Made by a program: the position numbers and the translations under genes. Under the pieces are notes generated by a model. That model had not been told where the DNA came from. It saw only the letters and a list, made by a program, of their open reading frames with translations, and did not search any database. Below, piece by piece: positions 1-64,000 of a DNA stretch of 64,000 nt (its first letter is position 1; each line of letters opens with the position of its first letter). The stretch is from Lepidodermella squamata (taxonomy: Eukaryota > Animalia > Gastrotricha). The DNA lies in assembly GCA_047495785.1 (NCBI GenBank), contig JBLDXI010000021.1, positions 2,542,001 through 2,606,000 of the forward strand, given 5' to 3'.

Positions 1-1372
1 TCGGAAGTATGTCAATCTGCTATTGCTGACGTAGACAGGCCCAGTAATTAGCGTGACTTCTTGAGAGCCTTTGCTTGTAAGTTGTTGTTTTCTTTTGAAA
101 GCATCATATCGAAGAACAAAGCAAAGTAGAAGACCTGGAACAACAATATCACCCAATCTGAAATAAAGTAATAAATTAATATATTTAGCCTCATTAAGGC
201 AAAAAATTACCCCAGCATGGTATAGCGCCCACTTTGCCAGCTGGGAAATACGAGCTTTCCTGGCAGAGACAACTTGGTGGCGCCAACAGCGCCATTGCCC
301 GGTGAACTTATGAAATGTTGATGCGCAGAAATGTGCTCATAATTGTGTTGAGGAACTTGAGATGGCCCACTCGAACGAACAACAAATTGCGGCTCTCGAG
401 CTAATGGTGCTGAAGTTGACGCGGCAGATCCGAATGATGAGACTAAAACTGCCAACGGGGAATCCACTGTTCGTGTAGCAACGCGTACCATTACATTCGT
501 TTGGAACAAATATGAGGAGAAGAAAACCCAGAAAATGTCGTATAAAAGTAGACCAACAAGAAGGAGAGTTGAAACTTTCAGAGATGGCAATCGAACAAGC
601 GCTATAAAAGCCACACATAATCCCATTGCTAGTAAATCCATTAATAGCCAATGCCCAGTAACAAGCCAAAGAGATACTAGCGTTGCTCCGCCGACTGCCG
701 CAGCAATTTCTGATGGTTGATAGCGCCCAAAACAAAGTACCGAGCCAGTCGCTCGATGGTACGAGGCTGAGCAAGGTGCCATAAGAGCTTGGCATAATGG
801 TAAAAGTAAGAAAGCAAATGCCGCTGTCGCAAGTACACATGTCGCGATGACAAAAATTAGCTGAAGGCTCTCGAAATACAAAAACATGACCAATAAAGAC
901 ACAGAAGCAGCTAGTGGCATCAGGGCAGCCTATGGTCAAAAGTGGGTTCATCAGCAGCAAATTTTAAAATTGAAGCATTACCTGCCATGAGCCCAAAATG
1001 TGCCATGTGCACCAAGGCGGTGGGTTGTTTTGCCTGAGGTTACGACTGCGATCGTTGGGACAGTCTGAACGGCCATGTTGCGAATCAAGGTTTAACGAGC
1101 TACAAAACAAGTCAATCATTTTCAAAAAGAAAATCCAACAAATATTGAATACCGAAAGCTTCCATAAACAATGAGTGCGACAGAAACAGCGTATGTTGCC
1201 AGTCTAGACGTGTCGAATGCTGAATAGGGGCTAAAAATGAAAGTATTGCTGCTTTACACGACAAATGATATTAACTAATAACAAACAGTAACGACACTGG
1301 CTCGCCGGCTCCATTGTATGAATTGTCATAAACAGCCCCACTCTGCGATTGCGGAAAAGAACTCTTATCCAT
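1..1372 (-). CDS. SPPL3: Signal peptide peptidase-like 3 (GxGD aspartyl intramembrane protease); 3' end lies beyond the window
   Basis: Spliced reading MDKSSFPQ...PYSAFDTSRLATYAVSVALIVYGSFRSLN...LLYDIFWVFFS (YD)...KLSLPGKLVFPS...MLGLGDIVVPGLLL (GxGD, joined across intron 210-158). Four short GT-AG introns. Confidence 0.93.
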
Positions 1373-1864
1373 CCTAAAATTTATAATGAATGCAATGGAA
1401 TATCGATGAAATTGATCATAAATAGAGGTCAAACGACGAATGAGAAATACTAAAGAACTAGCAGCCGCCCTATTACTTTTTTCCCACTTTCTTACTACTT
1501 ACTAATCAGTTCTAGTTTACAGAGGGTGAAGTTGTTAACACTCGATAAATTAGTGGACCAATCGTATTCCGCAATTATGGAAATACCGTGATGGAATACA
1601 GGGAATTCAAAATTCAAGAAGCAAGAATCTGGATCTGCAGTTGACTTATCTAGTGGGATATTAGGGGAAGCAAGGAACAGGCGAGGAGAGTGATGCCACG
1701 GTGACGAAATGCGGTATACATTCTTGATTCACGAGCCCAATCACAAGTTTCCCGGTGTTTGCTTGGGTATTAGGCATCAGTTTAAGGACTTCAGTCACTA
1801 TGGGGACAACGATATACTTTTTACAAGCGTTTATTGCGCATAAGTAAACTGGTATAGTACATTA

Positions 1865-2024
1865 CGTTCACGTCGCGGAAGAACTCGCACTTCGGTGTTT
1901 TTTTTTGATTACTGTACTGTCAAGTACGGTTGGCTGGCTGTATTTTTCCGTTATATTTACACCTACTGTACTCAGTGTATAGTCGGACTTTTTCCGAAGT
2001 GCGAGTTCTTCCGCGACGTGAACG
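1865..2024. repeat. Inverted-repeat (MITE-like) element with perfect 31-bp arms
   Basis: 1865-1895 CGTTCACGTCGCGGAAGAACTCGCACTTCGG is the exact reverse complement of 1994-2024. Confidence 0.8.
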
Positions 2025-2197
2025 ATTACAGTTATAACATTTTAACACCTCTACAGTTCTCTGTTGTTCCTCTACAGTTCGATACCAAAAGCAGTTTGAA
2101 AAAAAGTCGAAGTCCGGGCAAAGAGACATTGTTAATTCATGATCATGATCGTGATTCGTGAAGTGACCGATAAAATCAATCGACCTATTCCGGGAAC

Positions 2198-2628
2198 CAG
2201 TGTGGTCCAAACGTGGAATCCGGAGACTTTTGGACTCTTTTCGACGTTTTGTGGGCTCCGGAACGTTTTTTGGTTATTTCGAGGTTGGACTCCAAATGGG
2301 CTCCGAATCTGGACTTCGCCAGGCTCCATCGGACTCCCTCACCTGAAAGTGGTCACCAACTGGAGGTTGCCCATGAATCCGCGAACTTTAAATGCATTTT
2401 AACCATTTTCGGCTTGAAAATGCTCAATAAAGCGTTAGCTAAAGCTCGCTTCGCTCACGAGTCGACTTTTTTGAGTAATTTTTCAGGCCGTGAATTTGTC
2501 TGAACACAAGGGTAAAAGCATATCACCCCCCCCCCCCTCCAAATTTTACTGAATACACTGTGTGGACTCCCCCGGCGTTTTTGGGCTCCGACTGCGGACT
2601 CCAAACTTTTTGGACTTGGACCACACTG
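2198..2628. mobile_element. hAT-like non-autonomous element (MITE)
   Basis: 13-bp TIR CAGTGTGGTCCAA...TTGGACCACACTG. 8-bp TSD CCGGGAAC/TCGGGAAC (1 mismatch). Many subterminal GG(A/G)CTCC repeats. Confidence 0.8.
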
Positions 2629-3642
2629 TCGGGAACCGTAAGCCCAATCGCCAGTCGCCCGACGACATTCTGGGCTTCAGTTTGAGAATTTAGAACCCCA
2701 GTCACCGCTTTGGCGATGTTTTACACGACGGGTTAAGTGGCACAAAAAGAATTGGAATAAAATAGATTTCGGATCGTTGACTGCTATATACCCTCTATTT
2801 CATATAAATCTCTATTCCGAAACAATTTTTCTCCTAAATAGTTTATCAGAAAAATTTAATTATCATATAGCGCGGAGGGTTGTCAGAGCATTATTTCTGA
2901 AGGAGGAATGATGTTGCCGACAGGGGAATAGCAGCCAACAAAACACTGTTCAACCTTTGAAGTCTCGATGAGTGCGCGGTGTCGATTATTAGTTCGTCCG
3001 GCAATGCCGAACGGATAGCGCAGGCCTTCCTATTAGGCTCCATTTACTATCAAATCTACAAGCTACAAGTATAAGTAGTAAAGCAGTAAAATGGGTAAAG
3101 GAACGTGAATACTCACAATTCTCTCGCTCGCCTTTTTCTCAATTATTTAATCAAGTTTCAAAATTGATCCCTCAACTCTACAACCTTTCTGACATCTGAC
3201 AAAGCAAATGCTCCTCTGCCCTTAAACTGTTCGACTTCGTTCTCACACATCACTACATTCTCGATGTTTTAAAAGGTACTTAAAGAAATCGAAGTTCACC
3301 AAAAGCACATAAGCTGAAAAACGATAAGACTGTTTCTGACTCAAAATCGGAAGAAATATCGTCAGCTAGAGCTCGCTTCGCTTGCGTTAAAAATCATAGT
3401 TACATAACAATTCTCCGAAAAGAATTGTACCGTTCGTCATTAATGAGGTTTCCATATAATTCTGGTTGGAAGCGTTCATTATAGCCCTAGCTACTATTGC
3501 TTTGGGCCGAAGGTGTCCAACTTGATTTCGCCACTAAAAATATTGAAAATATATACTTAACTGATTTAAACACAAAAAAAGGTTGAAACACTACACAAGT
3601 CTCGACATCAAGGTCTCGAGGAAAACACTGCAAGAACGATCA

Positions 3643-3861
3643 TGGTACACACATATCATATCGTTAGCGACGCGCCAAAACAACCACTTTACTATTTATA
3701 GATATAATGAGGAAAGTACGTTCGAAATTAGGAAAAAATCGGTGCTCAAAAGGCCTAACGTACTTCACCTGTACGTTACGCGACTAAAAGTACGATCGAA
3801 TGAGTCATCTAAGTGGTTGTTTTGGCGCGTCGTTAACGATATAATATACGGGTGTGTATCA
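3643..3861. mobile_element. MITE-like element with about 45-bp imperfect TIRs
   Basis: ATATCGTTAGCGACGCGCCAAAACAACCACTT (about 3658-3689) is inverted at 3811-3842 with 1 mismatch, extending outwards to TACACAC/GTGTGTA. Confidence 0.7.
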
Positions 3862-4224
3862 TAGGTGGATGTCACGAGGGATATTGACCTGAAGGCTTGT
3901 TTGCTATTCTGGCGCTGCCGAAGGACTGTATAGCGGGCTGGAGGCCGAATACCGAATATCAATATTCATCGGTATCCACCAATATCACCGCGTTCCCCCA
4001 GCTATTCCAGCGCAACGCGCTTTCCCTTACGACACTTATAAGGAGCTGAACTTACCGCAGAGAAAGTAATTTTACCTCACGCGAGTATTTGTATGCTAGA
4101 GTGTCGCAGTGTGTAGTGCCGTTAAAGGTAAATCATTTACCGCAACTAGAGAACAATGGCGAGAAAGAGTTACCGTCTAATGGAGAGCTATACCGAAACG
4201 CTAGCGATACGCAAGTGAGGGCAA

Positions 4225-4800
4225 CCCTTTCGCCTTAATCGAATCCGTTTGTTTGTTCATATTTTGCTTCAGCTTCCGCATCGCCAACACCTCGTCGAAG
4301 ACCAGGCAGTCCCATTTGTTTCGTCCTTTCATTATCATCTTATCAATCGCAACACCATGGCTTTGCATGTGCTTGCCAATACCCGTATTATTGTCCGCGT
4401 TCAACTCGTTCGTGCAAGTGTCGAGACGTCATCTCGACATAATCGACAACGCACCGATCACATTTAGAGTAATACACGACTCGTTGCTCGTTGATGATAG
4501 ACGGCTTTCGCTTTTCGGACGATGACCTTCCTGCTGGCAAATACGGTTTCCCGTTCAGTCTTATTGCTGAGATCTCTCGATTGCCGTTTAACTATCCTGG
4601 AAGCTTTTCATTGATGTAGGGAATAGGTGTGCGTTCTGATTTCTTAACCTCGCTGGATTCGCGATTACGAGAGGCTTTTGAATTCGATTTTATCGAAGAT
4701 CTGATTAGAATTTTCACTTTTCATGGGTATTTGGGGAGAAGAATCAAGTCATTTTTCTAAACAAGCCATTAATCGTCGCTCACCGCCATCTGAGATATGA
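4225..4800 (-). mobile_element. Penelope-like retroelement 3' fragment (GIY-YIG endonuclease), degraded
   Basis: Minus strand encodes ..CDRCVVDYV..TCT..GIGKHMQSH..KGRNKWDCLV..MNKQTDSIKAK, a typical PLE GIY-YIG C-terminus. Second copy at 51.8-52.6 kb. Confidence 0.7.
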
Positions 4801-6847
4801 TGCGGTAGTTGACCCCGATCAGGTTTCGGACCTATTCATTCATTCGACTGAAATCTAAAATCCTTCATTGGGATATGATGTAGTTTTCGGAGGCTCAAAC
4901 TTCAAGTTTCAGGCGAACGATTTAGAACAAGGTACAAACTACGTTTGAACCTGTTGGCACGTTTGAATAACGTTTGAATTTAACGCTGGAGGTAATACGT
5001 TTGACGGTTTACTAGTTGACAACTTTCGATAGTTTTTCTTCACTTCGTGCTTTTCGTGCACTAACCTGGGGCGTTATTAATAAAAGAGTCGAATCATGAG
5101 TTTGACCATTTCTTTTTAATTGGCAGTTCTCGGAAAAATATTATGAAGCTTGCAGTAACTTACTCCGTCTGTGGGGAGTTTTCCCTTTTCATCAACTTAC
5201 CGGTAAAGGTAACAGTTCCTGTGTCCGTTACACACCATCCTGAACTTCTCTTAGCCTAAAAAGATTTGATTGATGGTATGTTTCACAATCAACAGGCGTA
5301 TTTATAAGTTCCGTGAAAGATCAGCGTCCAGCAAACATGACGTGTACAATTTAAGCGGGAGATTAAAAGTGGGATGCAAACTATGCGGTCTGTTTACAAC
5401 ACTGAAATCTCCATCGGTTTACATTATTCAGCGTTTAAATTGAGTAATTAAGCAATTATGAGATCCACATCCACCTAGGCAGGTACTTTGGTAAGTTGGA
5501 AATTTGAAATCAGTCTTTCGCTAACACCAGCACTAACGTGTTGATCTAGCTGGAATTTCATCTTACTAACAAGATTGTGAACATAGTTTTTTCAAACAAA
5601 TGAAGAATTTCGCTTTAAAGTGGACTCAGGGGAGCTGTTACTCCCCCTTCCACAGCTACGCCTCAGACACCTCTGACAGACGCGTTCCCACGCGTGTTTC
5701 CCTGCAACGCAAGTTGCGAGATTCGCGCAAAAGTTTTGAATAAATTAGCGCGCTATGTTTTCACAGTAAATTTGAAATATTTTTCTCAAACTACTAGTAT
5801 TTTATATTTTTCAGAAAAGAAATAGCGGAAATTATTATTTCAAAATTAATACCTGAAAATTGAGGGTATCAACATTTTGGGGGAACGAGAACACCCGTCA
5901 AATTTACTCCTGTTTTGGCAAGGTAGCTTCTGTAGGCAACTTTTACCCCGGGATAAGACGCAGTCCTAAAGGCCTGCGAATTCTGGTTCTTGCTCCGTAG
6001 CCCTTGGAGCTCGCACTCTTGATGACTGGTGTGATGCGACTTGGATCTTCGAACTTCTCTCACGGCTGCGTACTCTCAAGTCATTAGTAAGAGTCAGTTA
6101 AGGGTTAAGGGCTTGCTATAGGAAAACCTTGATCTCACGGTCCTGTCTTTTAGCTCTTCGCGGTCACAGTCCGCACTCCATACCCCTCTTTTGCATCAAG
6201 TTGCAGAAAGAGAATCTGCCAGATGGAATCACGAGTCATAACAAATATCAACATCACTCGATGGAGAGAGTTGACTGGCAATCGTGAAAGTTTGAATAGT
6301 GTGGTGAGTAGTAGCATTTGTAGCCTCTAGCCTCATTGATTTGTATATCGGCGACTGTGACCTTACATTAACTGCTGCTCTCTCAACTGCTTTAAATTCT
6401 CGACAAAGCTCAAGACTTTCTTTATTGAATAGGTAATCATTAAATATTCACACGATACACTTGGTCAGATTTTCATGAACCATGATATTCCTGTGCATTC
6501 TTGTGCAATGTGTCTCAGCAAATATAATATCATGTGATCCCCACTGTGACCGAAGACCAATTGTTTATGCATTTAGTAATACAGCTACCATAAATAGCTA
6601 ATTAGCTGACTTGGTCTCTAGATTTTTAAAGGCCCGAAAGCCCCGCCCCGTCTTTAATCCTGGTTCTGAAATTGACCTGTGCGGCAGCCCGCGTGGCAGT
6701 ACCAGCCTTTGTAATGAGTAATGAGAATGTCTCTGCTTTCTGACTTGCCCTGAGAAACCGTCATTTTCTATATTTCTAACTGCTCTGTGTGGTGGAAAAT
6801 GTCATGGATTTCTAATAATTGCATAGTAGTTACTAATTCGATAGAAA

Positions 6848-15519: not shown

Positions 15520-17440
15520 AATAAAACCAAAATCCCTATTAATAGGTTGATGAATGAATCAACTAATGATTTGTCGACAATCGAACATTAGAATATACAC
15601 CTTTTGTAGAAAAGTACAAACAATACATAAGTCATAAGTATACAGCGAATTTAGTGTATTTAGTCCGATTTTTATCAAAGGCTTGTGGGATGATGCCAAT
15701 ACTTTCAAGTTATGCCTCATCTGAAGAAGATCGCCTTAAACCATACTTAAGCACAATGCAACATGACAGTTTATTGGAAACGCAAGTGTTGTTATCATTC
15801 TTCTGAACCTCTAATGCAAATTCGGAAATTCCGGCCTTTTCAAAGTTAAAAACGGTCAGATGGAATGAATTATGCACTGTGTAATATAGTAAAAAACACT
15901 CAATTTGCTGTACTTGGAGGCAGACTAAATTTGTTGGAGACAAACTATAGACCTTCATCATAGGATGCAGCTGAGGAATGGGGAACCCACTCAACATCTA
16001 GCCCGATACGATCAGCAATAAAGAGCTGAAAATCGTAATTAAAAAAATCGTGTCACAGCCACCATGCCGATTTCAACCATCATCACTAGAAAGCGGTGGC
16101 AATACCTGGGTCACGCACTTCGCAGCGACTCCGCAACAACGGGCGACGGAACGGATGAAACAGGTGAGCAAAGCAACTGAGTCGCGCAGTTTGTACAGTG
16201 TACAGTTGGCCGTCAGTCCTTGCTTCAGGCCATTTGCGGCTCTGCGGCATTCGCTTCAACAAGAAAAGGACTACCTCTCGCCCGCGCGGGGTTATCTGGA
16301 TTCAGCTATCATCATAACAGTTGAAGGTCATTTTATTTCTAATTGGCATTTCTCATGTAAATTAGTATTCAAAATTGGAATACTGCAAATCAAGCGGGTG
16401 AATTTTTATATTTTTTTTTACGAAAATCACGAAAAAAATTAACACGACAAAAGACATCTTTCGGCTATGGCTGCTGCGTGCATTCATGTTTCTTATTCAC
16501 CTGATGTTCTTTCATCGGTGCATGTGCCGACCTACGGCTTTTTTGTTCTTATTTCTCGTTTAGCTGAGAAAGCAAAAAATGGCTGCCTGGAATGAGCTCC
16601 ACTTTTGTTTGACGCTGCTCCTGACAGAATTTGGCCTAAATAAGGATCAGTTTTTCCTCCCATCTGCGCCCGTTGGATGGAAGTGAGAATCCAGCGTATA
16701 ATTACATACGTACCTATATAATAGTGTTGAAGTTTGAAGTTTATCTTAATTGTCTTTAATAGCAGTTAGCTGTTGTGCTTCTACTCCTAGGCAAAACATC
16801 TAGTTGAAACCTTTCTTTTCTAACAAGTCCAAAAATAGGTGCGTATTATTTCGCAGACACACTGTATTTGTGTTGCGCGTGGGCTCATAGACGATATTTC
16901 CGTTATGTCTTTCCTCTTGCCCATCCAATTTATCAAGCTGTGCACAAATTGGATGGGCGTTGTGCGTTGTGCCTTTCCTGCACGCCATTTTGATTGACAA
17001 TTGTTTTTAATTCAAAATTCTTTTCGCCGGTTTTTTCTGTTGTTTTGCTTCTTCACCTTCAAAAGGTTCATGTTATTTACCTTATTCATATTGCAGTTTT
17101 CTATTCTGTAATCTGCAATCTGGTGCGGCTTACTCTGCGTCCGGTTCTTGGTCTGTGATTCGCATTTTGTCCAGTCACCCGAAATGGTCCGGCTTATAGC
17201 TAATTGAAGTCTGGTTTCAGTGAACTTTCAGTGTATACAAAATTGATACCAAAGACACTTAGAAGGCATGATTAGCTTGCACTAACTTTTGACTTGTGAT
17301 CCCAGGCCTGTAAAAACTAACATGTAAAGCCTTGTGCCTGGTTTCCTTTCTCTAAAGCATGAAAACCAACATGACATTGCTTTTATTTACTCCGTTTCAT
17401 CTATTCACAATTATATTTAGTCAACGTCGTTTTAATCGTA

Positions 17441-19191: not shown

Positions 19192-19485
19192 TAAAGATGT
19201 CGCTTCAGTGCGTGCATAATTTGGGTTTGAATCCATTTGAGTGGAAACGAATTGTTGAAAGTCGACGAATATCTTCCGTGTTATTGTATACCACATCATT
19301 AAAATATGATAATTACGGCACAAATTGTAGATATCTGTGCGATAATATGATTATATTTGAAGTGAGCGGTTGAAATTATCATTGTTCTTGGCTGTTTGTT
19401 TATAAATTGATAATTATATTTAACACCGATTGTAATAATGCCATAACTTGAATGATTTTCCATTTCTTTTAGTGTTTAACGAGGT

Positions 19486-22876: not shown

Positions 22877-23781
22877 CTACCAGTATTTGTGATTTATTGG
22901 CTTGGGTCTGAAAATTAACGTTGCCAAAACCAAGTATATGGTGGTAAAAAACGAAGAAACGGACAAACCGCCCGAAAATCCTGACGATTCCCAGTTAGAA
23001 ATAAACGGGGAGAGTCTAGAAAGAATAAATACCTTCAAATATCTAGGAAGCATAATTAGCTCTGACGGTACTTGCACTCTGGAAATAGAAGAGAGAATGC
23101 AAAAGGCCGGGTCTTGTTTCGGGGCATTAAACAAATTCATAAATAATAAATCGCAAGTCAGTATCCCTGCAAAAATGAAGGTTAAGCGAGCTGTGACTCC
23201 GACACTCCTCTACGCTTCTGAAAGTTGGAATGCAACCGCAGCTCACCAACTGAGGCTGGATGTTGTGCAGATGAGGTGGCTTAGGGCCAACGTCACAATT
23301 ACGGACAAAATCAGAAATGATGACACAAGAAAAATCTGTGAAGGTATAGAACCTATCTCAGCTCAAATAGAACATAACCGACTACGTTTCTTAGGGCACA
23401 TTCTTAGAATGAATGACGATAACCTAGTCAAGCAAACATACTTATGGACCCCACCCAAGGGCTGGCATAGGAAGTTAGGCAGGCCCAGGGTAGGATGGGA
23501 TTATTGTAACACTCAAAGCTTATTGCAAGCAAAAAGTCTTGAAAATTACAAAAATTTTGTAAGCGTCTACAATGAAAAATGTCTAAATTGGGACAAAATT
23601 GAGGAGACAGCTTGTGATCGGTCTAACTGGAGGGCCTTCATTCGCGAACTTCTGGCCTTCAGGTCGCGGGGAACGGAATCTACTAGACTTCTCGCTCTCG
23701 CCGTCGTTAAAACTTTATTGTATGCCTCACCAACGCAAAACGACGATAAATAAAAACCAAATGATGATGATGATGATGATG
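22877..23781 (+). mobile_element. RTE-like LINE, 5'-truncated, with (ATG)n tail
   Basis: GLKINVAKTKYM, FKYLGSII, LLYASESW, RLRFLGHILRM, RKLGRPR, DRSNWR. (ATG)7 tail at 23761-23781. Confidence 0.85.
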
Positions 23782-24828: not shown

Positions 24829-24830
24829 TA

Positions 24831-33944: not shown

Positions 33945-33946
33945 TT

Positions 33947-42570: not shown

Positions 42571-42574
42571 GGTA

Positions 42575-47953: not shown

Positions 47954-50133
47954 CTATTGAATTCCGCAGACAGGCCTTGAATGTTTAATCCATCACGAAA
48001 ACTTCATTTTCATTAAAATTCGCAAGGAAGCCTATTTAATGCGCATATTCGGTGTATTCTTCATGTTATTATAATTAGTCATTTTCACGCTCGCGTAATA
48101 CGAATGTTATACTTCACACTTTACCTATCAGGAAACAAGATTACAAACTGGAAAGATTCCGTTGACTCTCTACCATCAAAAGTCGTTCTGTCTAGCAACG
48201 TATTTCTTCGCTCTCCGGATGGAATAATTCATTTTCAAAACTAATTCAAACTGAAAGTATACTGTCTTTTCTGAGATGCACTAGTGGTTGTTAAGCTCGT
48301 ATGCGCGTTTTGGTGGATGGGTTTCCAACTTCAAACACAAAATAAGGCCTGAAAGGGGAAAAGGCGCCACGATTTTCTTACCTATCACGGGGAGAACAAT
48401 ATTTGCAATATCTGACAGATTAGGAGGGGAGAGGGGAGGTCGGTTTGGACTTTGCACTGGTCATCTGTCAATATCGTTATAGAGCACGGCGAAAAAGCGC
48501 AAGTTATATTGAGTTGAAAAGATTTTTCAATAAAACAGAGTAAGAAAAGGCACATGAAAGAATATAAGTAATGCAAATATAATATAATGCTTACCAAATG
48601 GAATACATTTTATCTGACTTCGATTCTGATCTGATGCTGCAAGCGTTTTAATCAAGTCCTGGCACAGGCGTTGACTGCGCTAAACAATAAACAACGAAAA
48701 ACTTGCGGAACCCATAACCAACTCCACCCCAGGACAAGGCAACAGACAACAAACAAGACCTCATCCGAGACGGCCGAGACAGCCTGAGGGCGGTGAGTTC
48801 GACTTTTCGTCTCGGCCAACATACTGGGCCGCGCAAATGAGAAAAATAACATATAAATATTTCTAATGCATATCAATAAATAAGTAAAAATATGTAAAAA
48901 ACACAATTTGAAATATTTGTTTATATTATGCGTCACAAAATTATGAAAATATGGCGGTAAAACAAAGTTTGAAACGTGGGTTTTTTCACCAAAAATAAAA
49001 CCAATAAAAACATTGATCCAAAACTCATATTTTATGTCATCCAATTATGACATTTCTTGGCCCTTAATTTCATCGTCTGATAAGCATGAAGCCTGCTGGT
49101 GGGAAATCTTAAAAAGCTGAAGTAGTTGCGCTCCGTCGTTGACCTGAGCAGACGACACGGTTGTATCCGCAGAGGCCGCTTAAGGATGCACACGTGGGCT
49201 GCCATACCTCTCAATGGTTGTCTCGCTCGAGAGGTGGGGAAACCCACAGGTCGATTGACGGTCTTCTACGAAAAGGCTTACATAAACTCGAGCGGGGTTT
49301 GGCACCACATCCAATGGTGTCGGGTCTTCATTAGAGTGGGAGGAGAGAGTTGGCAGCCAGCTCACTCTCGGATCTTCCAAACCTGTCATCATCAACATCA
49401 TCATCATTATAACTTATATTTGCCAGTTAGCTCAAAATAAGCTTCTTTGTCCAGGGTAACACCTCGCAGCTTTTCATGGCTCTATTGCTTTCCGTGTAAT
49501 CGCGTGGTGGAAGGAGCTGCCGAGTGAGTTGCTATCATCGTCTGAAATTTTCAGAATGTTACTGAAAAGGAAGCTGGAAATGAAATCCGTATCATAAAAA
49601 AACCCATGTCATTCTGTCTATATGTAGTATATGTGTATATAGCCTTAACATATACTTGGTATATGAAATAATAATAATCACATCCTTCAGTTACCAAAGT
49701 GTTATTGTTTTTCGGGTATCGCAGCGTCTAATTGTTTATTTTGTACGATCAAAAGAACGAATTAGTGTTATTAGTGCTATGTGCAAAGTGAACAGTAAAC
49801 GACAAAGTTTGAACTATTAGTTGAATAGCAGTTAGATTTCGATCAAACCCACCATCAGGCGACTGTCCTGGTTCCCAAGCCTGAATTACCATAAATACCT
49901 CTTTTATTTCGTTATCATAAAGAGTGTTATGTCAGATCCCGCGTGCGACGAGCCGCGAAATTCTATCCACCTTGTTATCTCGCTATCTCTCGCAAGTTAG
50001 AATTTGATGGTTGAAGGTTGCGATTATTCCGCAATCCGCAGCTGTGCAAATGGCAATTTATCGTTACCGTTGCCTTTTTCTTTACCATTATCTTTTCTCG
50101 CCATTAGACGATTTATCAGGATTTTGTGGCGAA

Positions 50134-51450: not shown

Positions 51451-51796
51451 GAGAAAATTCCCATTAGTTTTATTGATGGAAAATATTTTTTGCAATGAAA
51501 TAAAAATAATTTAAATAATCAAGCAGCGAATTCAAGCAATTCAAACATTCGTTGATGAAATTGAGCGCTATAAGTTTATTTCTGACGATTCGGTTATTTT
51601 CCATATGTAACTATCTTCAGGGATACAGAGGATGAATTTTCTCATGAAGTTAAAATTGTAAAATTAAGGCGGAAATTTAAATTAGTGATAGTAAGGATTA
51701 TAAGCCTAATCTGATCCAGTAAATACGATTAATCTCTAACTAAAGTTATCTCGGCCTGGCTCGCCTGCACAGCTCATGAAAAATAAGCTCCATGAA

Positions 51797-53170: not shown

Positions 53171-56100
53171 TCTTTATATCTTTATTTCTCTATTTCTTTA
53201 CTTCTTTACTTCTTTACTTCTTTACTAGAAAAATCGTCTTTACTGAAAAATCGTATTTGTGTACATACCTACCAACAACAACAACTGTTTACTTTCTTGG
53301 CAAAAATAACAAATTTGACTACCTATATTTATTGTTGCCAGCTTACACTCTCATTCTGAAAATTATATTTTATTTCATCGTCGAGCATTTATTGCGCCTA
53401 TATATAATAGAAAAAAATGATAATAAATTTCAAACGATGAGGAATTATTTGCGTGTACGTTTTTTTCGGCGAGAAATTAGGCAACAATTGAAAAGCAGGC
53501 TTTCATTCACAAAATAAGGAATATGTACAACAATGCCGAAGAATCGAATGTTCGAGATCAAGAGGTGTTCTTTTACAGCAGCAGTCATGCAGCAGCAGCA
53601 GCAGCAGCATGTAAAGCATCGCTGCGCCAGAAATGTTGGGCCTGTCCTTTATTTTTCACAAAACAAGTCGAAACCCCGTCTTATATGTGAGACCGCCCTT
53701 TATTTGAGGCCTGACCTTAATCGAACCATTCTCAGCTCATCACGCGGTACAACGCATCCAGTCGCCTCTGAATCGACCTCTAAATAGATCGGCATATGCT
53801 CAGTTTTTTAACCCAAAAGGAGAACGCGATGATGATGATGATGACGTAATATATAATTCGAATTCCGAATTCCTTTAAACTATTTCGAAAGTTATCAAAA
53901 TATATCATAAAATGATGATATTTATTTATTTATTTATTTAGAAGCTATGACACCCAAGAGAGGGCAGCTTGACAATGTTTGAAGGAAAAAGCAACAGATA
54001 ATTTCAGGACAGGTTCAGATTTAGGACAGGAAAAGTGAGCACAGTGAGACGAAACAAAGGTTTGGACCATTCATCGTTTTAATATGTAGCAGTGATCAGT
54101 CAACAATTTGGATCAGTAGTACATAGTGTGTAAAAATAATAAAGATAATATTAAAACAAAATCTCAACAACTTCATAAAAGGCAGTAGCAGCTCATAATA
54201 GCTTCACAACAGTAAAAAAAAATAGAGTGCAATCAATTTATTAAAGTGCTAAACTAGAGGCATTTTTGTTGTAGAAAAAAGCGTGAGCAATTGAACGGCA
54301 TATGTCAGCTGACTCGGCCTGCCGTGCCTCAATAGGCAGTTGATTCCACAGTTCGGGACCTCTGTAACTCAGACTAAGCATTTCTCGGTTTGAGTCGCAT
54401 TTCGGCTTGAACATGGGTTCGGAATTTCGAACCTCGTATCGGGGAGGCGGGTTCAGACAAAAAAGCGCTTGCATTGCAGCCGGTGCTTGCTTGTTAAGGC
54501 ACTTCCATATGAAGGTGGCCAGGTGGATGGCGTGTTTTTGTTCCACGTCAACCCAGCCAAGGCGATGTCGCAGTGGTTGAGCATCAGCGAGCGGATGAGC
54601 GCCACAAATAACTCGAACTGCTCGGTCTTGCGTCGATTGAAGCCTGGCCAGTGTGGTCGGGGCAGCTTGGCCCAAGGTCAGGTCACCGTAATTCAAGTGA
54701 CTAAATATCAAACCATTGGCCATTAAGATAGCAGTCCTACGACTTACGAACTTCGAGGCCAGCTTGAGAGCAAACAAACCTCTTCTTGCTTTGCTTTTGG
54801 CACCATTTATGTGCTTCTGGAAAGACAGTTTATTGTCGATCGTAAAGCCAAGTGTTACCATTGCACTTGAAGGCTTAACAATTGCGTCGCCGATTTTAAT
54901 ACAGAAATCCGGAGCCGTAGGCATCGCGCATTTCAATATCAAAAATTGCGACTTTTTACCGTTAACCTGCAAAGAGTTGGATTTCAACCAGCAACAAACC
55001 CGATTGATTTCCTGTTGAAGAACCGATCTGAGTTCGTTGACGTTCCGACTGGCGAAATAAATTGTTATATCGTCTGCGTATTGTTTGATTCCGCAGCGCG
55101 TAACGACGAGTGATAGTTCATTTACGTACACTGTAAACATAAGTGGCCCTAAAACTGAGCCCTGAGGCACACCATGGTGAATTTCTTCGAAGGCAGATAG
55201 TGCGCTGTTAATCTTTGTAGCCTGGCGGCGATCGCTCAGGTAGTTACTCAGTAGATTCAGGGCGCTTGTTGAAAGACCCGCACTTTTGAGTGACTCGATG
55301 ATGCCACCATGGTTCAACGTATCGAATGCCTTTGATAGGTCGATTGAAATGGCACCAACGACCTTGCCTTCACACATAGAACGTCTCCAGTCCTCAGTGA
55401 ATTCGCCGACACAGGTGTCTGTGGAATGCTTCTCCCTAAATCCATGCTGTGCCGGTGTCCAGAATTCGAAAAGATGCTTTTTTAGTTGGAATGACAAGCA
55501 TCGCTCAAATGTACGTGCGATCGGTGATGTTATTGATATGGGACGATAATTGCTTAGGTCAGTACGGTTTCCCGATTTGTGAAGAGAAGATACGATCGAA
55601 ATCTTCCAGTCTGAAACAAAGACTCCTTCCGCGATTCCCATGTTGAATAATCTCGCCAGATGACAGGAGATTGTGGATTTGGTCATCTTTACAACGCACT
55701 CAGGTATGCCGTCATAGCCAGTTGTCGCTTTGTAGGATAGTTTATCGATAGCTGCCTCCACTTCAGCTAGCGAGACAGACCGAAATTCGAGGTTAGGATA
55801 CTTTTTTCGGCGCCTAACAAAGCTGAGGCTCGCCGCTAATGTTTGAGCAACTTTCGCGCCGGCTTGCGCGAAAAATACATTGAAAGCATTTGCCTTTTCC
55901 AATGACTCATTTCCACCGAGCTCTTGAAAGGGTCCACCGCGTTTGGGTTTCGGTCTGAAATCATTTATCACGCGCCATATTTTGCGCGGATCTCGACCTG
56001 CTTCAGTCAGACGCTTGTGATATTTTTCTCGACGCATTTTTCGACGTATTCTTTTCCTTTCACGCCGTGATAGGGTCGGGTCAACACTGGGCTTCCGCTT

Positions 56101-57715
56101 TTTGTTTGGTTGATTGGGCTTCTACACAATCAACGGGGCAACTTCGTTGACCGCTTCCAGTATGTAGGCTTTGATAATTTTCCAATAGCTTTCACAGTCA
56201 TGAATTGCCTTCTGATCGATCGAATCTAATTTAGCTCCCAGAATGCAGTTTAAACGATTCGAGTCAATGTTGCGCAGGTCACGTATTACGCGAACATCTG
56301 CATTTTTCGTTTCAGTAACGCCACTGTTCTCAAGAACCATTGTCGTTCCGTAATGGTCGCTGAGCCCGACTACTGTCCCAGCCATTGCCACTTCCGAGTC
56401 AGGAACGTTTGACCAGAAATGATCCAGGCACTTCCCAGAAGCAGGACGTGTTACCAAGTTAGCATAGGCCGGATGCAGGCCAAAGTCATTAAAAACTTCC
56501 TTCATCGCCTCTGCAACCTTCGGGTTAAGAAGATTCCAATTGAAGTCACCAGTAATTATGTGATAGTCGGCCTTAGTTGTTAAGCATTCAGTCAAAAACG
56601 CCTAAACTTCGTCAGCGTCAGATGCTGTGAAGGTCTCGCTATCACTTGGCCTTCGGTAAATGGCGGTTAGTGCTAGAGTTTTACCAGACGGCAGCTTAAT
56701 TATGCATTGCTGATTTTCAATTTTCGTTGAAGCGATGACTCGGTCGCAAATAACATTATATAGCTTGTAGATCAACAGTCCTACGCCACCTCCGTTGGAT
56801 CGATTACGACCTTTCCAGAAACACTCATACCCAAGGTAAGGATCTTTGAGACTTAGGTTCGGTTCGAACTCATCTTCCACGTATTTCGGGGTACACCCTT
56901 CCGGTATTTTTGTTTCACCTAGCATGATAGCCATTGGTCGAATAACTTCAGCAAATTCAGCTAACTCTGGCAATTTTTCCTTGGTAAGAAGTCCATTTAA
57001 ATTCGCATGAAAACAAGTGTGAAGATCAGGTGAGAACCTTGACTCCACCAAGTTATGGTGTTCGAGAGTAGGCAGAACAGTATCTGAAGGCCCAGGGTTT
57101 GGGGACAGACCAGATATGAGGAGTAATATCAAAATAAAACCCCTTTGTCGTGAGATTTGCCGGAAAGGATTCCGAGGATTGAAGCAAAAAAATATTGCAT
57201 ACCACTTATGAGTGACGCGTTCCGTTGTTCGCCCATCGTGAATGCCATTGTAAGGATGCCATGATACATTACGCGTGGGCGACCTGATCATGATTTGAGG
57301 CCTGACCCTTATTACTATTTTGAATGACCCTTGGGCCCCGTCTTATATTTGAGGCCGACTTTTATACGAGGCTGACTAACTTTCTTTTCGGGCAGTACGG
57401 TATTTATTTACAGGCGACACACCACTATACCTAATATAGAATTATTAGAAAATTATTAATATAACAGTTTTTGCTTTTCTTTATAAAAGCGATCTTAAGG
57501 ACCGAAAATGTCATTTGCAATATCACGTATTGTCGGACATAGCGCAATCGCGCCAGCAGCAGGTCCACTAAAAGTTGGAAAGTAGTCATTTCGATATATT
57601 ATTAAAGAACTAAAACAAAAAAAATAAAAAGTCCGCCTTAAACAAATCGCCTAGATGCTACGCTCCATTAAAGAGGTAAAGAAAGTAAAGAACTATAGAA
57701 TTAAAGATATAAAGA
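53171..57715. mobile_element. Putative long copy of the (TCTTTANN)n element containing a nested LINE and pogo-like fragments
   Basis: TCTTTA array at 53171-53228 and inverted array at 57667-57715, with 57550-57715 homologous to 8942-9110. Confidence 0.5.
53921..57291 (-). mobile_element. CR1/L2-like LINE ORF2 (APE + RT), two in-frame stops, (TAAA)n tail
   Basis: HANLNGL, LGETK, GGGVGL, IYRRP, ITGDFN, CLDHFW, SDH (APE). NYRPIS, QHGFR, GVPQGSVLGP, QYADD (RT). One reading frame 57291-54241 with TAG at 56602 and 56122. Tail at 53921-53940. Confidence 0.93.
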
Positions 57716-59309
57716 AAACTATTCCCACATACGCATGGTTAAATTTTGCCATGGAGAAACACATGTTTCTCTATGGTTAGAAATATTTCTCTATGGCTTG
57801 AAACTGCCACTAATTTGGGCAGCATTTTGCTCGGAATTGGCCTCGAAACCCACAGAAAACGCATTTTCTCGAGAGTCTTAGGAAAGTCACTACTAGAACA
57901 GCGAAAACCCCAATTTTATTTAAAAGCAATTTCAATTTTAGCACGTGCAAAAACAAAACTTTGACAAAATGAGGCAAAACGAGGTCGTCGAAATCTCTTG
58001 CTGGCAGCCGTCGCGATGCAGATCCGGGTTTACCTCCGAAATCGCGGTTTTGAGCAGCAACGTTACAGGCGACAATGACTGGTTTCTCGGCGAGTCTTCG
58101 ACCGGCAAAATTGACCCATATCCATGATCATTCCGCCGCGACCTGAATACCGTTGGATAGCATGCAGCGAGCGGATGGCTTTCATTGTTGTCAGTCTTCC
58201 AAGCGACGCGATGCCTATGCTTGATTGATTTCTGTGCGAAACCGGCTGGCTGGCGATCGATTTGAGTGGATTCTTCTAGGCAAAGATTTGTTCGTGTCCA
58301 GACTCCATCGAATCAAGGCAACTGACGATTTCGGATCTTGGCTTGATGATCGGGGCTTGATATCGGCGCTCTGTTTCATGAATCTTGACTACTGATGCTT
58401 CGGCCAGCCGGAGAGCATGACGATTTCGACAACGAATGAGGGTTGGCCAAAAATCAAGTTGCAAACAAGAAAAAATTCGCCGAATGAAAAGTGATTTTCT
58501 TTTACAAACGAAGAATTGTTTTCGTGAAATTTTAAGTTGGATGTTTTATTCTCTCAAAATGGTTATTATGAATTCACCCCTATTTGCCTATTACACCCTT
58601 TTAGGGAGCCTACAGGTGTCGTGCGCATGTGGGAATAGGATTACTCTATGGCAAACCATGGAGAAATATGATTTCCCCCCGATCTGGAACCCCGAGTGAG
58701 TTTGGCTGGTTTATTCGAAACCTCATGTGCACCGCCCACTGAAACCCCTTTTTTTTATTTACATAATCTTTCGGGTGCGTACTGATGATTATAACGACAT
58801 CCTTAGTTCGTTCATATAGCGTCATACTTATTTGGTGATATTTCGTCAGCTTCTCACAAATCACCAATTTTAGTGCGAGCGGTGGGTTTTGAACCTTTCG
58901 ACGAGCCATGGCACAGCTTAACCTTATTAGTTATTGGGCACGAACTGATATGAAAGAATAGTTATCGGACCATTTTTGCCTGACCAAGACGATGCACGTA
59001 CAGTTACTATTAAGCCCAGGTTGAACATGTCTGTAACTGTAATATTGGTGCTTTTAATCGTGGCCCAAATCACTCGCCACTGCCTACAGCAAATAAAGCA
59101 CGCACGTATATCGCTTGCGTAGGTTAAGAGATGATAAAATCACATGCATCAATATCTAGCCATATTCATTCTGAACCAACCTGTAACGACAAACACGAGG
59201 GGGTGATAAAGATAAAAGGCTGCACTCATTCTCTTTTGCGAGTTTATTCGCTCAAAATCATACTCACAAGCGTCAGTCAAAAAATAATAGAAGCAATGGA
59301 TCGGAATCC

Positions 59310-61798
59310 TCAACCGAGCTTCCACGCGTGTAAATTCTGGTAAGGCTCAAACGACGCAGCACGGTACTTCTCAGCGCACGCGATAGTTGCAGCTACTGAT
59401 TTGGCATCGCCCGTGTAGCAATCCAAAATGCCTCGGCCAACTATAATAACGTCAGTGCCGCGGTCCCTTACAGCCTCTTCTGGCGTAGAGTAACGCTGCC
59501 CAACCGTATCGCCTTTCGCTGATAAGCTAATTCCGGGGGTAAATACAGCGAAATTGTTGCTGCTTTGGAAGTTGTTCAAACCGCTGATATGTTGAGCATT
59601 CTGAGCAATGACACCGGCGACGAATCCAGGGAATTGGCGAGCCATGTCGACACATGCTATGTATAAATAAATAAATAATTTATAATTGGATATACTCATT
59701 CGTCATGAATATCAAATTACACAAATTTCACAGAATATCACAGTTGGCTCACAGAAATGATAGTGGTGTTCAGAAACAGCGAAGTTTCTCGAGTTCAAAT
59801 ATTAGGTAAATTAAATTCCAGGTGCCGTGGAGAACCATGGCAATTTGATCGGTAAAACAAATTTTTGAAGATTTTTACCTCAATTTAAAACCCCTAAAGC
59901 TTGTGAAGTATCAGTAAAATACTATTATCGTAAAATGTAGTCGTCGGAGTCCGAAAAGGAACTGAAGAATATGTTTCATCGATGTACATTTACCGCAAAG
60001 ATAGCTCGGCCAAATGTCCGGATTCCACGCTAATACAATCATTACGGAGGCAGGACCGACAAAAGGGCAGGGTTGGACTCTTGGTAAGTATTGAAGACCT
60101 TTTTGCATCGATGGAAAATGCATTTTTCATGGAAGAAATTCCTTAGAAAAAAACAAAGGACTACCCCTGGATGCCGCCAGACCGTTCACGTCGTGGAATA
60201 AATCGCAATTAGGTATTTTTCTGATTACAGTAATTCGTGTAAGGCTCGGACAGTATTCTTCCGTACAGCCCATTCCGACAGTATTTTATGTACGGTATTC
60301 AGTATTAGTAGCATTTTTACGGTAAATATTCAACTACATTTTTTAGTTTTGTGAAAGTGCAAAAATTAAGACAGCAAGGTATAAGGATAACTACTTGTTT
60401 TAAACTGGTACATCTTATCCGCATGTTGCACAAATCCATTTCGAAGGTTTTGAGCAGTCCGCTCCCTAACTTCTAACAGTAATATCAAAGCTAAGAGTGT
60501 AGTGCCAAGGTGTGCAGTGCATTGCCAAGGTTGATAAATCCGTGGCTTGAAAAGGGAAAACAAAAAATCTACCGCTTACATTTAGTGTATTCATTCGTGA
60601 TCAGATTGCCGTCACAGCTCATTTGAGCGATAAGCAAAACCCCGCATGATTTATTTGGTAAGGCCGTCGACATTGCACGAACTTGATCTACTCCAGAGAT
60701 TGCATGAACAGTCACCAAATCGGCCCACTGGCAAATTCTGCCAAAAATTCGTTTAGAAGTGTTGCCAATATCGGCTAGTTTGCGATCTTCGATTATCAAA
60801 AAATTGTGTTTCTTTGCCAAATCGACAAGCTTCTTCTCCGTATCTTTATTAAATTCATCGACCAAAAAGTCGACGTGAGTCTTGATGGCGCAGACATAAG
60901 GGCCAAGAATATCAGCAAGATCCAACAACTGTTTGCATGTCTCGATGTCTGCCGCTACGCACAGGTTGGTTTTTTTAGATCGAATTATTTCGAAAAGACG
61001 ACGTCCAACGCTAACTGGTGGCGTTGAAATAATTTCAGTCGACTTGGCTGACGAGCTCGGAAGTTTGTCTACTTTGGCGCCATTCTCCTTGTCGTTAGCA
61101 GTTAAAACTTTCGGAACTTCAAGTTGAACTCGGTTGGCATGCAAAAACTGAATGGCCGAGTCTACGAGGTTTTTGTCCAAATGGCCTGTATTTTGCAACG
61201 CCACAAGCATGTCGCTAGCCTTGAAGAGGAACGTGCATGAAAGACCAGCTTGAGCAAGATTCGAAGCCCCGCCTTGCTCACGATCCAGCAACGCAACCAC
61301 ACCCACAACACGCAAACCTGCGGCCTCGACTGCCTAATAACAGGAAGCAAGCAAACAAATAAATGAAACTGGCGAAAAATATAGTAGGCTTACCTGCACT
61401 ACTTCTATAATACTAGTTCCACTAGTCACTGTATCCTCGATTATGATACAACGGTCCCCAGGCTTGAATTTACCGTCAATGAGAGTCATTGTTCCATAAT
61501 TTTTCGCTTCTTTACGCTTAACAACAAGTGGCGCGCCAAGTTGTTGGGCGGCTAAAACCGAGAACGGAAGGGCAGTGTAAGGGACGCCGCAAACAACATC
61601 GAACGAATCACGTCCGAACTCGGTCTCAATACGCTGAGCGATTTCAATACTTAGGCGATTAAGTATTTTAGGGTACGACACAAGAACGCGAAAATCGAAG
61701 TAAACCGGAACAACCATACCAGTTTTCAGCTTGAAAGAGCCACATTTTATCACGCCAATATCATGCAGGTCGGTAGCAAAACGCTCGCAAATATCCAT
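59310..61798 (-). CDS. UMPS: UMP synthase (OPRT + OMP decarboxylase)
   Basis: Exons 61798-61394, 61333-60580, 59656-59310. Motifs CGVPYTALP, KRKEAKNYGT, IIEDTVTSG, NLCVAAD, KTHVD, EDRKLADIGNT, GQRYSTP, IIVGRGI. Confidence 0.96.
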
Positions 61799-61924
61799 TA
61801 CTGAGTTTTCAGAGGATCACCAATCAGAAAATAGCCTATAAACGAATTCATGGCGTGAACTTTTGAAGCATTTTATTTAAAAAAGGTAATTAGTATCAAC
61901 TACCAGAAAGATAGCATTTCAAAA

Positions 61925-63177
61925 TCACGAGCTGATGCGCAGCAAGAAACTGAATACATTTTCAAAAATAAATTTATAGGAGGAAGATTTTTCTACGCTC
62001 TCTGTATCTCTAATCGCGGCTAAAACATCCTCTCTCCTTAACGGTAGGTCTCTCAAAAATTCCGATAGCAGATCTTGACAAGTCGTTAATTCAGTCGATA
62101 GGGCAGTTGTTGTCTGAATCTCGAATTTATTCACACAGCCTTCCTCAATCGAAAATACAGCTCTCACTGTATCGAGCGCCAGTTTGAATGAGTGGCTGAC
62201 TACGAACGGTGGCGTTTTGCCGAAAATCCAATCCCAAGTGCGATATTCTTCGCATCTGCGGTAGTAATCAACTATCAGAGTCGAATCGTTGCATAATACA
62301 TCTTCAACTGAACATGAGTCTTGTTCGATAACGGGGAGATCGAAATTTCCTTGACCTGTTTTGAGCGCTGGAGTATTCAAATAAACATCCAAAAACGCAT
62401 GTATCAAATTATCCGGGGTGAAATTAGGCGTCGATCGATCCATCGTAGAATGACATGCGTTTATCACAGGGGCTATCCGACTAGGAGTAGCCCTTGAAGA
62501 AATTATTTCCGATGGTGAGATGGATGATTTCAAGTATCTTTCCATGAGAGACAAATTGGCATCAACCAAACAGGTAAAGTGATGTAACGAAGTAAACTTG
62601 TCCAACCTCGAAAAATTTGAATTTAATTTCAAATTGGCAATTACTGACCAGGTAAGTACCTTGCAGCTGTTCCTGAAATTTTGTGACCATTTAGCAAGAT
62701 GTCGAACTTGTCAGTAATTGACAATGCAGAATGTCCAACACCACAAGACACCAACGCATCTACCAAAACTTCCAAGTTTTTTTGTCGATTATAATTATTG
62801 CGATCGTTGACGATGGAAAAGTTCACATTTCCGCTGTCGTGATAAACTGTACCGCCTCCGCTGATTCTTCTGGCAACTTCGACTGAATCATTGGTCAAGT
62901 TTTGTAGGCTGCATTCCAACCAAGGATTTTGATGACGACCAATAACGACGCAGTTTGGTTTACTGAGAACATGTGATTAGAGAACAAATTCGGAATCTGA
63001 TCATCTGCAAACCAACCTCATGTATATCATCAGAAGGGACCAACCTGGCAACACAACACAGCGCTCTGTCAACGTTGCCTCAAGCGAGAGATAGTCATAG
63101 ATTGATCCGGGATTAACGGAAATCAATGCCTCTTTTTTGAAAGCTGGCAAAATCAATCGACGAAAAAACATGGACAT
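61925..63177 (-). CDS. LIPT1: Mitochondrial lipoyltransferase 1 (lipoate-protein ligase family)
   Basis: Exons 63177-63017, 62962-62660, 62606-61925. Motifs CVVIGRHQNPWLEC, ARRISGGGTVYHDSGNVNFS, KISGTAAR, HHFTCL, WDWIFGKTPPF. Confidence 0.92.
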
Positions 63178-63419
63178 CTAGGAATAAGCACACTAGGTAA
63201 ATTCGTGCCGTTTTATTTCCATCAACTTAACATCTAGATATATCAATGCATTCAGTTTTACAAAGAGTCTTCAAGACCGATTTTATTAGAAAGACTCAAA
63301 AGGATCTACGCAACGGGTGACAAAATAAAACGAGACTGAATTTAATAAGCGTTATTTCTCGTTTCCCTCTTCGCATGAGGCTCGAGAGAGGCTTGAGAGA
63401 ATAAAATACCGAATTGAAT

Positions 63420-63859
63420 TCATTGTTTCTTCGACTGGGTTGCTACGATAGCTCCGCCGAGAAGAAATGCGACCGTTGCGCCTTGCGCAATGACACGAGC
63501 TCTGTAACAAACGCAAGTGTGATACAGACAACAAACATACAACAAAATTATTACCTCATCATTAGCTGGGAGCGGTAATGATTTCCTTGTTTCATTGAAA
63601 TCAATCCATAAGTAAGAATGGCAGCTGTGGCTAAGCAACCTGAATGAGAACTTGAGAATAAGTAGAATAATAATTAGCATCAGATCAAACCGATAGGAAC
63701 AAAAGGGTTATCATTCAGCTTGCTTTTCAGCTTTGCCATCTGCTCGGTTTCTCGCTCTTTCTGCATCTCTAAAATTTCATTTAGAGGAGCAGCGGGCAGC
63801 GATGGTAAATACTTGAATTCCCCGTGCTGAGTTGCTTGTTGCGGAATTTTATCGCTCAT
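63420..63859 (-). CDS. HIGD2A: HIG1 domain family member (HIGD2-like, 111 aa)
   Basis: Exons 63859-63691, 63639-63555, 63501-63420 give KLKSKLNDNPFVPIGCLATAAILTYGLISMKQGNHYRSQLMMRARVIAQGATV. Not visible as one ORF. Confidence 0.9.
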
Positions 63860-64000
63860 TTTAATTTATTAGTTGAAAATTCTAGATATAATTCTAGACA
63901 TGAAACATTACTAAACATAGACGCTTTTGCATGTTTGAGAGTAACATGCAAGAACTCCGGAAGCGTAAATTAGTAAACAGTATAGAAGACATTCTATTCT

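Follow-up and report, generated by a model that had tools for sequence, protein, structure and literature searches.

Spliced-leader trans-splicing in the gastrotrich Lepidodermella squamata: a leader joined to HIGD2 RNA and acceptor-like TAGs upstream of 12 start codons

We analysed a 64,000-nucleotide (nt) stretch of the genome of the gastrotrich Lepidodermella squamata (assembly GCA_047495785.1, contig JBLDXI010000021.1, positions 2,542,001 to 2,606,000 of the forward strand), referred to below as the window. A TAG trinucleotide lies 0–37 nt upstream of the start codon of all 12 recognisable host genes in the window. These TAGs are probably the 3' splice sites of outrons, the 5' segments of pre-mRNA that are removed in spliced-leader (SL) trans-splicing. 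This reading, first proposed in an initial annotation made from the letters of the DNA, is supported by leader junctions in RNA contigs of one gene, HIGD2, and by metagenome contigs in which the same leader is directly followed by a GT donor. The statistics of the TAGs, the acceptor-like tracts that precede them, their conservation in a relative, and a 19-nt gap between two neighbouring genes all point to trans-splicing as well. For the other 11 sites we infer, with good support from sequence, both their use and a preference for UAG over CAG, and the terms of the initial annotation ("every gene", "unpaired", and "TAG-biased") are to be read in that sense there.

A leader is joined to HIGD2 RNA at two TAGs

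RNA evidence was sought in positions 58001–64000 of the window (6 kb), a region that covers three of the 12 sites (HIGD2, LIPT1, and UMPS). Assembled contigs from three sequencing runs were used. Runs X1 and X3 come from different years and studies, and X2 is genomic DNA. The X1 and X3 contigs are identified as RNA because they leave out five short GT..AG introns of the minus strand and have their poly(A) end at 63198. They confirm the gene model of HIGD2 and the greater part of that of LIPT1. When the RNA-validated HIGD2 product (111 amino acids) was looked up as an exact protein in indexed assemblies, there was no match. The HIGD2 features are as follows.

63882–63884, minus strand: HIGD2 trans-splice acceptor TAG, with the exon starting at 63881 and the ATG at 63859 (X1 RNA contig)
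63894–63896, minus strand: alternative HIGD2 trans-splice acceptor TAG, 12 nt upstream (X3 RNA contig)
63198–63217, minus strand: HIGD2 3' end, with AATAAA at 63217–63212 and the poly(A) site at 63198 (poly-T ends of X1 and X3 contigs)

In the X1 contig, the genome match of HIGD2 ends at 63883 and is followed by 20 non-genomic letters; written as RNA, the junction reads GCGAATTTGATTTGTGTCTA, then the AG at 63883-82, then an exon beginning AATTTTC. In the X3 contig, the match extends to 63895 and is followed by 25 non-genomic letters, giving CATCTGCGAATTAAATTTGTGTCTA joined to the AG at 63895-94. Non-genomic 5' sequence is thus joined exactly at a genomic AG, at two different AGs. The first of these is the very acceptor predicted by the initial annotation for this gene, and the neighbouring TAG at 63896-94 is used too. 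The contigs neither read through the AG nor join the gene to a nearby genomic exon, the two outcomes that had been named in advance as evidence against trans-splicing.

The leader seen in the two RNA assemblies is …GCGAATTTGATTTGTGTCTAAG together with a 2-nt variant, the X1 and X3 leaders differing at two adjacent central bases. In both joins the terminal AG is common to the end of the leader and to the genomic acceptor. Such sharing of letters, by which leader mapping over-extends into the acceptor, has been described (PMC7986045). Because the AG is shared, the leader ends in …CTAAG and both joins are canonical. The leader has no match in the window at up to three mismatches, including the 105–117 nt upstream of the HIGD2 acceptors, a span well beyond the 51–60 nt of the short RNA-verified introns.

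The leader has a candidate gene in a ribosomal DNA spacer

Metagenome contigs were scanned with the leader query GCGAATTNNATTTGTGTCTAAG, and two contigs matched (L005 and L006). Each holds an exact 22-nt leader match directly followed by GTATGT. The leader …TGTGTCTAAG followed by GTATGT occurs in three copies in L005, which differ at central positions, and also in L006, where the sequence reads …cagtaaccATCTGCGAATTTGATTTGTGTCTAAG/GTATGTATCGGCTCCTGAGCC… (slash, leader boundary). A leader directly followed by a GT donor, as expected of an SL RNA gene, is therefore present in these metagenome contigs, which come from relatives or from the species itself. Published criteria for such genes, implemented in SLIDR, include an Sm-binding motif of the form AT{4,6}G located 20–60 nt after the donor, and flanking stem-loops (PMC7986045). 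The third copy in L005 is followed by a small hairpin (TGATGA-G-TCATCA) and then by an Sm-like motif, ATTTTTTG, 40 nt past the donor.

Rfam matches place these leaders between ribosomal RNA genes. The order in L005 is the 28S 3' end, 5S rRNA, the leaders, and 18S; the order in L006 is the 28S 3' end, 5S, and the leader. The leader exon with GTATGT thus sits in the intergenic spacer of the ribosomal DNA (rDNA) on the minus strand of both contigs (L005:2370-2560 and L006:700-820). Two of the L005 copies lie back to back, the first copy precedes them by about 30 nt, and leader variants could arise from such a layout.

The leader on HIGD2 could in principle be an assembly chimera, or an ordinary first exon of HIGD2 located far upstream. 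De Bruijn contigs, a window that ends 105 nt upstream of the acceptors, and a leader known from one gene leave some room for this, yet we find it hardly credible. Two independent runs place this leader at separate canonical AGs; its two versions differ at two central bases, as copies of a multi-copy SL gene would; and an identical 22-mer with GTATGT is present in the rDNA spacers of two unrelated metagenome contigs. Since the leader exon has a donor of its own and lies within rDNA spacers, it is not the first exon of HIGD2, and trans-splicing accounts for the junctions.

TAG is enriched immediately upstream of start codons

The window is 43% GC animal DNA. Its best named protein matches are about 48% identical and scattered across annelids, molluscs, brachiopods, and arthropods; one metagenome protein has 87% identity. 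The remaining large open reading frames (ORFs) are reverse-transcriptase elements or their debris, so 12 is a fair count of host genes. The putative acceptors of the 11 genes other than HIGD2 are listed below; a slash marks the end of the TAG, and distances run from the G of TAG to the ATG.

1374–1376, minus strand: SPPL3, aaattttag/gATG, 1 nt (sequence)
6842–6844, plus strand: UBE2L3, ttcgatag/aaaATG, 3 nt, with further TAGs at 18 and 21 nt (sequence)
15536–15538, minus strand: AP3D1, ctattaatag/, 16 nt (sequence and relative)
17418–17420, plus strand: SPOP, atatttag/, 20 nt (sequence, statistics only)
19470–19472, plus strand: POR, ccatttcttttag/, 13 nt, strong tract with 82% pyrimidine (sequence)
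28071–28073, plus strand: Mad/Mxd, gcatttag/, 6 nt (sequence)
39213–39215, minus strand: XPO7, tttcttttgatttttgtag/, 37 nt (sequence and relative)
47954–47956, minus strand: PTP, aattcaatag/ATG, 0 nt, ATG at 47953, weak tract with 53% pyrimidine (sequence)
50105–50107, plus strand: GrpE, ttttctcgccattag/, 26 nt, 82% pyrimidine, alternative CAG at 14 nt (sequence)
61836–61838, minus strand: UMPS, gtttatag/, 37 nt, ATG at 61798, alternative CAG 2 nt before the ATG (sequence)
63178–63180, minus strand: LIPT1, ttcctag/ATG, 0 nt, ATG at 63177, no room for a promoter (sequence)

The corresponding distance for HIGD2, corrected for the window end, is 22 nt. The sequences and coordinates given for all 12 sites in the initial annotation are correct in the window, as is its caveat that GrpE and UMPS have nearer CAGs. 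At Mad/Mxd, two further TAGs (20 and 24 nt) and one CAG (32 nt) lie upstream. The assigned start codons appear correct: the proteins of UBE2L3 (MAANRRLQK), UMPS, and Mad begin like their orthologues, the PTP ATG opens an N-terminus resembling a signal peptide, and the other evidence comes from RNA (HIGD2 and most of LIPT1) and from a relative (XPO7 and AP3D1, below).

The presence of a nearby TAG at all 12 start codons, as had been claimed, is above chance by four null models. TAG occupies 1.15% of positions in the non-genic DNA of the window and CAG 1.35%. A TAG is contained in 34.5% of 40-nt stretches of this DNA, giving p ~3e-6 for 12 of 12. Of 97 non-gene ORFs (60 codons or longer), the 40 nt before the first ATG contain a TAG in 31% and a CAG in 54%; this pseudo-start null, which removes the bias that comes from ORF-defined starts, gives p ~8e-7. 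Dinucleotide-preserving shuffles of the genes' own upstream 40 nt give a probability of 3e-4 that all 12 carry a TAG, and shuffles of the upstream 100 nt give 1.5e-5. The 18 TAGs observed in the upstream stretches were reached by no shuffle. The comparison with shuffled upstream regions that the initial annotation suggested, run here for the 12 genes of the window, therefore finds TAG enriched at P = 3e-4 or less.

The enrichment is local and specific to TAG. In these flanks, TAG accounts for 3.95% of positions -1 to -40 and for 1.36% of positions -41 to -200 (Fisher test, 8e-4), and no enrichment is seen between these intervals for CAG (0.66% vs 0.71%), TAA, or TGA. The TAG is in frame with the ATG in only four of the 12 genes, which shows that it is no stop-codon artefact of how ORFs are defined. 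At positions -20 to -4 of the 12 sites (17 nt), pyrimidines make up 63% of the bases and T 44%. These values match those of 34 curated internal acceptors (64% and 44%) and exceed those of 521 random intergenic TAGs (50% and 30%; p = 0.0017 for pyrimidine and 0.0005 for T). The 12 sites therefore resemble 3' splice sites and are more than mere TAGs.

The feature is conserved in a metagenome relative

Metagenome contigs of a relative were obtained via XPO7 and AP3D1; at XPO7 the coding DNA identity is about 71%. No close relative was found when proteins were searched with the first exon of POR (best match 56%). The XPO7 and AP3D1 starts have the same N-termini in the relative, reading MAQFEI versus MSQFDI in the XPO7 pair and identically MSLTLKKVKS in AP3D1. 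In the relative's XPO7 (contigs L002 and L003), a long pyrimidine tract and a TAG lie 21 nt before the orthologous ATG, with a CAG a few bases after the TAG, and the sequence of the 5' untranslated region (5'UTR) is not conserved. In its AP3D1 (L007), a TAG lies 10 nt before the start and the upstream DNA is otherwise unalignable. Three further genes of L007 have the same arrangement: a cullin gene (…tttgtttag/ATG) and two tandem SMAD genes (…ttttgtag/aaacgATG and …ttttgtag/aATG). A tract and TAG at 21 nt or less is thus present in 5 of 5 genes of the relative, against an expectation of 22% per gene (p ~5e-4). In these comparisons what is conserved is the presence of tract and TAG, while the sequence itself is not.

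The tandem SMAD genes (L007:19149-22119, plus strand) each encode MH1 and MH2 domains and have near-identical N-termini, MPLFDSLFQPKGK and MPLFENIFQPKTK. They are at most about 240 nt apart, each behind a long T tract and a TAG, and from this arrangement they look like a duplicated, operon-style pair.

The relative also provides a counter-example.

L002:5511-6696, also L001:3826-5011, divergent: histone H2A/H2B gene pair of the relative

No TAG or CAG occurs within 80 nt of either ATG of this pair, in contrast to the genes nearby. The histone genes, which have neither trinucleotide, show that the signal is gene-specific and not compositional; they also show that the rule is not universal in the lineage. 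To judge from their flanks, the H2A and H2B genes of the relative are probably not trans-spliced.

These comparisons bear on whether the TAGs might arise by chance or from the composition of AT-rich 5' flanks, or might serve another role such as closing upstream reading frames, with HIGD2 an isolated case. In favour of this, the sites had been selected by eye, AT-rich DNA contains many TAGs, and the complement CTA also shows some increase in the same 40-nt stretches (10 occurrences vs 18 of TAG). Against this, the four null models give P values from 3e-4 to 8e-7 for 12 of 12, TAA and TGA show no enrichment, in-frame TAGs are few, and the tracts match those of real acceptors. The feature is moreover kept in a relative whose flanks are unalignable and is absent at that relative's histone genes. 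We consider a chance origin very improbable.

Gene layout resembles operons

HIGD2, LIPT1, and UMPS form a same-strand cluster with short gaps. The poly(A) site of HIGD2 at 63198 is RNA-verified and lies only 19 nt from the TAG of LIPT1, a gap between same-strand genes that leaves too little space for a promoter. Transcription of LIPT1, at least, must therefore begin upstream, which calls for a trans-splice acceptor at or near its TAG. The AATAAA of LIPT1 (61877–61872) lies about 35 nt before the TAG of UMPS. From this layout the cluster is likely an operon, and we infer a polycistronic precursor. On the other strand, the SPOP stop codon (~19191) lies 280 nt before the TAG of POR, and an AATAAT is found about 32 nt upstream of that TAG.

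Internal introns and the question of cis partners

RNA-verified introns of the window are 51–60 nt long, with one of about 927 nt. No canonical donor is found at a typical intron distance upstream of 10–11 of the 12 sites, SPPL3 being the exception; this argues against cis partners, though distant ones are possible. The internal acceptors of a hand-curated set (n = 34) comprise 15 TAG, 18 CAG, and 1 GAG, a tally that is approximate since its members were picked by hand from candidates linking ORFs; it roughly reproduces the 22 TAG, 23 CAG, and 1 GAG reported in the initial annotation. The five RNA-verified internal acceptors comprise 1 TAG, 3 CAG, and 1 GAG. A gene finder based on codon log-odds and a splice graph was dropped when it mis-called the RNA-verified introns of LIPT1.

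On the trans side, by comparison, TAG is found at both RNA-verified acceptors, at all 12 putative sites, and at each of the five sites in the relative. In nine of the 12 genes the sole TAG or CAG within 40 nt is a TAG, and these stretches together hold 18 TAGs and 3 CAGs. As CAG is the commoner of the two in the background, the choice of sites by eye matters less than it might seem. Judged by these counts, the TAG bias of trans acceptors is likely real.

Two introns have features of their own. The LIPT1 intron at 62607–62659 (minus strand, 53 nt, RNA-verified) ends in GAG and not in TAG or CAG (…tttttcgag/GTTGGAC). The UMPS intron at 59653–60579 (minus strand, about 927 nt) is spanned by an X3 contig with four extra letters at the join; 59653–59688 is flagged as a skipped repeat, and low-depth X1 contigs inside the intron have joints between opposite strands. 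Inverted repeats were considered as the cause of these joints, and with only a 21-nt palindrome present the joints were taken as assembly noise.

The lengths of these introns help to judge a more restricted scheme in which only part of the genes is trans-spliced (for example HIGD2 or genes downstream in operons), and the other TAGs end cis-spliced 5'UTR introns whose non-coding first exons lie far upstream. Upstream of the SPPL3 TAG there are GTAAGT (129 nt) and GTAAGA (122 nt), GTAA-type strings occur 90–350 nt upstream of several genes, and RNA covers just one of the 12 sites. Yet introns of 51–60 nt (one about 927 nt) are the rule here and canonical donors are missing at 10–11 sites; the sole site reached by RNA is trans-spliced; and LIPT1, 19 nt past a poly(A) site, has no room for a first exon. 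This restricted scheme appears unlikely to us, and general use of the TAGs as outron acceptors is the better account.

Repeats and other features of the window

LINE-like reverse-transcriptase ORFs are present at 22893–26423, 31884–33944, and 54241–57291; two have clear RVT_1 domains and the others are degenerate. The leader sequence occurs in none of them. Adjoining the element at 54241–57291 is a high-copy repeat at 58001–58800, where the genomic run X2 has a summed contig depth of 900–5000, compared with about 100 elsewhere, and many variant letters. Rfam and tRNA scans of the window gave no match.

A model for trans-splicing at the TAGs

In the mechanism we propose, the pre-mRNA upstream of each TAG would be removed as an outron, and the spliceosome would join a short spliced leader in its place. 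The leader, at least 27 nt in the RNA contigs (…CCATCTGCGAATTTGATTTGTGTCTAAG, with variants), would appear at the starts of sequencing reads as …TTTGTGTCTAAG. It would come from a small SL RNA with the donor GTATGT directly after the leader, whose gene, to judge from the related contigs, may lie in the rDNA spacer beside 5S. With an acceptor 0–37 nt before the AUG, the mature 5'UTR would consist essentially of the leader, and where the TAG abuts the ATG the final AAG of the leader would supply an A at position -3. The same reaction could free the downstream genes of polycistronic transcripts, in the order HIGD2, LIPT1, UMPS and perhaps also SPOP, POR.

Several observations weigh against this model or restrict its reach. 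A leader junction is seen in RNA at one of the 12 genes, and the LIPT1 and UMPS contigs stop before the predicted acceptors: the X1 contig over LIPT1 (63116–61937, two introns) stops 61 nt short of the ATG, and those of UMPS end at 61790 (X1) and 61744 (X3). As the leader is seen on HIGD2 only, its sharing by many genes rests on the architecture of the rDNA-spacer gene, which is known from metagenome contigs and not from this genome's own. Of the architecture that the initial annotation had called for (leader, GT, and Sm site), the leader and GT are present in both L005 and L006; an Sm-like motif accompanies the third L005 copy, whereas in L006 hairpins are present and a canonical Sm motif is absent. 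For neither SL RNA candidate does the predicted fold improve on those of shuffled sequences. The tracts at PTP, UBE2L3, and Mad are weak (47–53% pyrimidine), and at SPPL3 the GTAAGT upstream of the TAG could be the donor of a cis intron. Assembled contigs, finally, can neither give the trans-spliced fraction nor reveal unspliced forms.

A bolder version of the model can be put forward only tentatively, as a possibility we hold to be short of even: nearly all non-histone mRNAs would be trans-spliced at UAG-specific acceptors, with UAG and CAG used about equally by cis introns, operon spacers of about 20 nt, and an SL gene in the rDNA spacer, in Gastrotricha, a phylum for which our literature searches gave no SL record.

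SL trans-splicing is scattered over the animals, and each new lineage bears on whether it was gained many times or lost many times; Gastrotricha would add a phylum. For genome annotation, it would mean that an acceptor a few bases from the AUG, and not the transcription start, defines the 5' ends of genes, that promoters may be far upstream or shared, and that tight same-strand clusters are likely operons. UAG-only trans-splicing beside mixed UAG/CAG cis-splicing would, if true, be unusual as a rule of 3' splice-site choice and open to testing, and would mean that the 3' splice sites of outrons and introns are recognised in different ways. What the present analysis adds is a junction at a site predicted from sequence, statistics, a comparison with a relative, and a histone counter-example.

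Comparison with known systems

The arrangement can be compared with SL1 and SL2 trans-splicing in C. elegans. In both cases a short leader from a small SL RNA (about 22 nt in C. elegans, at least 27 nt here) is joined at an AG just upstream of the AUG, and same-strand clusters show a poly(A) signal followed by a close next acceptor. The SL1 genes of C. elegans are linked to 5S rRNA genes. The leader here is unrelated in sequence, and its gene, in the relatives, shares the 18S–28S rDNA spacer with 5S. The poly(A) site and the next acceptor are 19 nt apart here and roughly 100 nt apart in typical SL2 operons; the putative acceptors here are all TAG, whereas the nematode trans-splice acceptor consensus is TTTCAG. 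No specialised leader of the SL2 type is among those seen here, which are from HIGD2 only.

Tunicate operons have very short or absent intercistronic spacers. In Ciona and Oikopleura a single SL class serves monocistronic genes and operons (PMC7986045). Our case differs in phylum and leader, in having at least two leader variants on one gene, and in that its operons are proposed from layout.

Among other protostomes outside Ecdysozoa, rotifers, flatworms, and chaetognaths are spiralian-grade groups with SL trans-splicing. To our knowledge, the leader found here matches no rotifer or flatworm leader. SL trans-splicing has been described in these three groups, with several SL variants in chaetognaths, as well as in nematodes, tunicates, and others (PMC7986045). 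In full-text literature searches, no paper connected gastrotrichs or Lepidodermella with spliced leaders or trans-splicing. The leader string turned up only as chance matches in unrelated papers, and the accessions of the metagenome contigs turned up in no paper. The mechanism is thus that of known SL trans-splicing, and what sets the gastrotrich system apart is a possible UAG-only rule, a 19-nt intercistronic spacer, and the location of the leader in the rDNA spacer.

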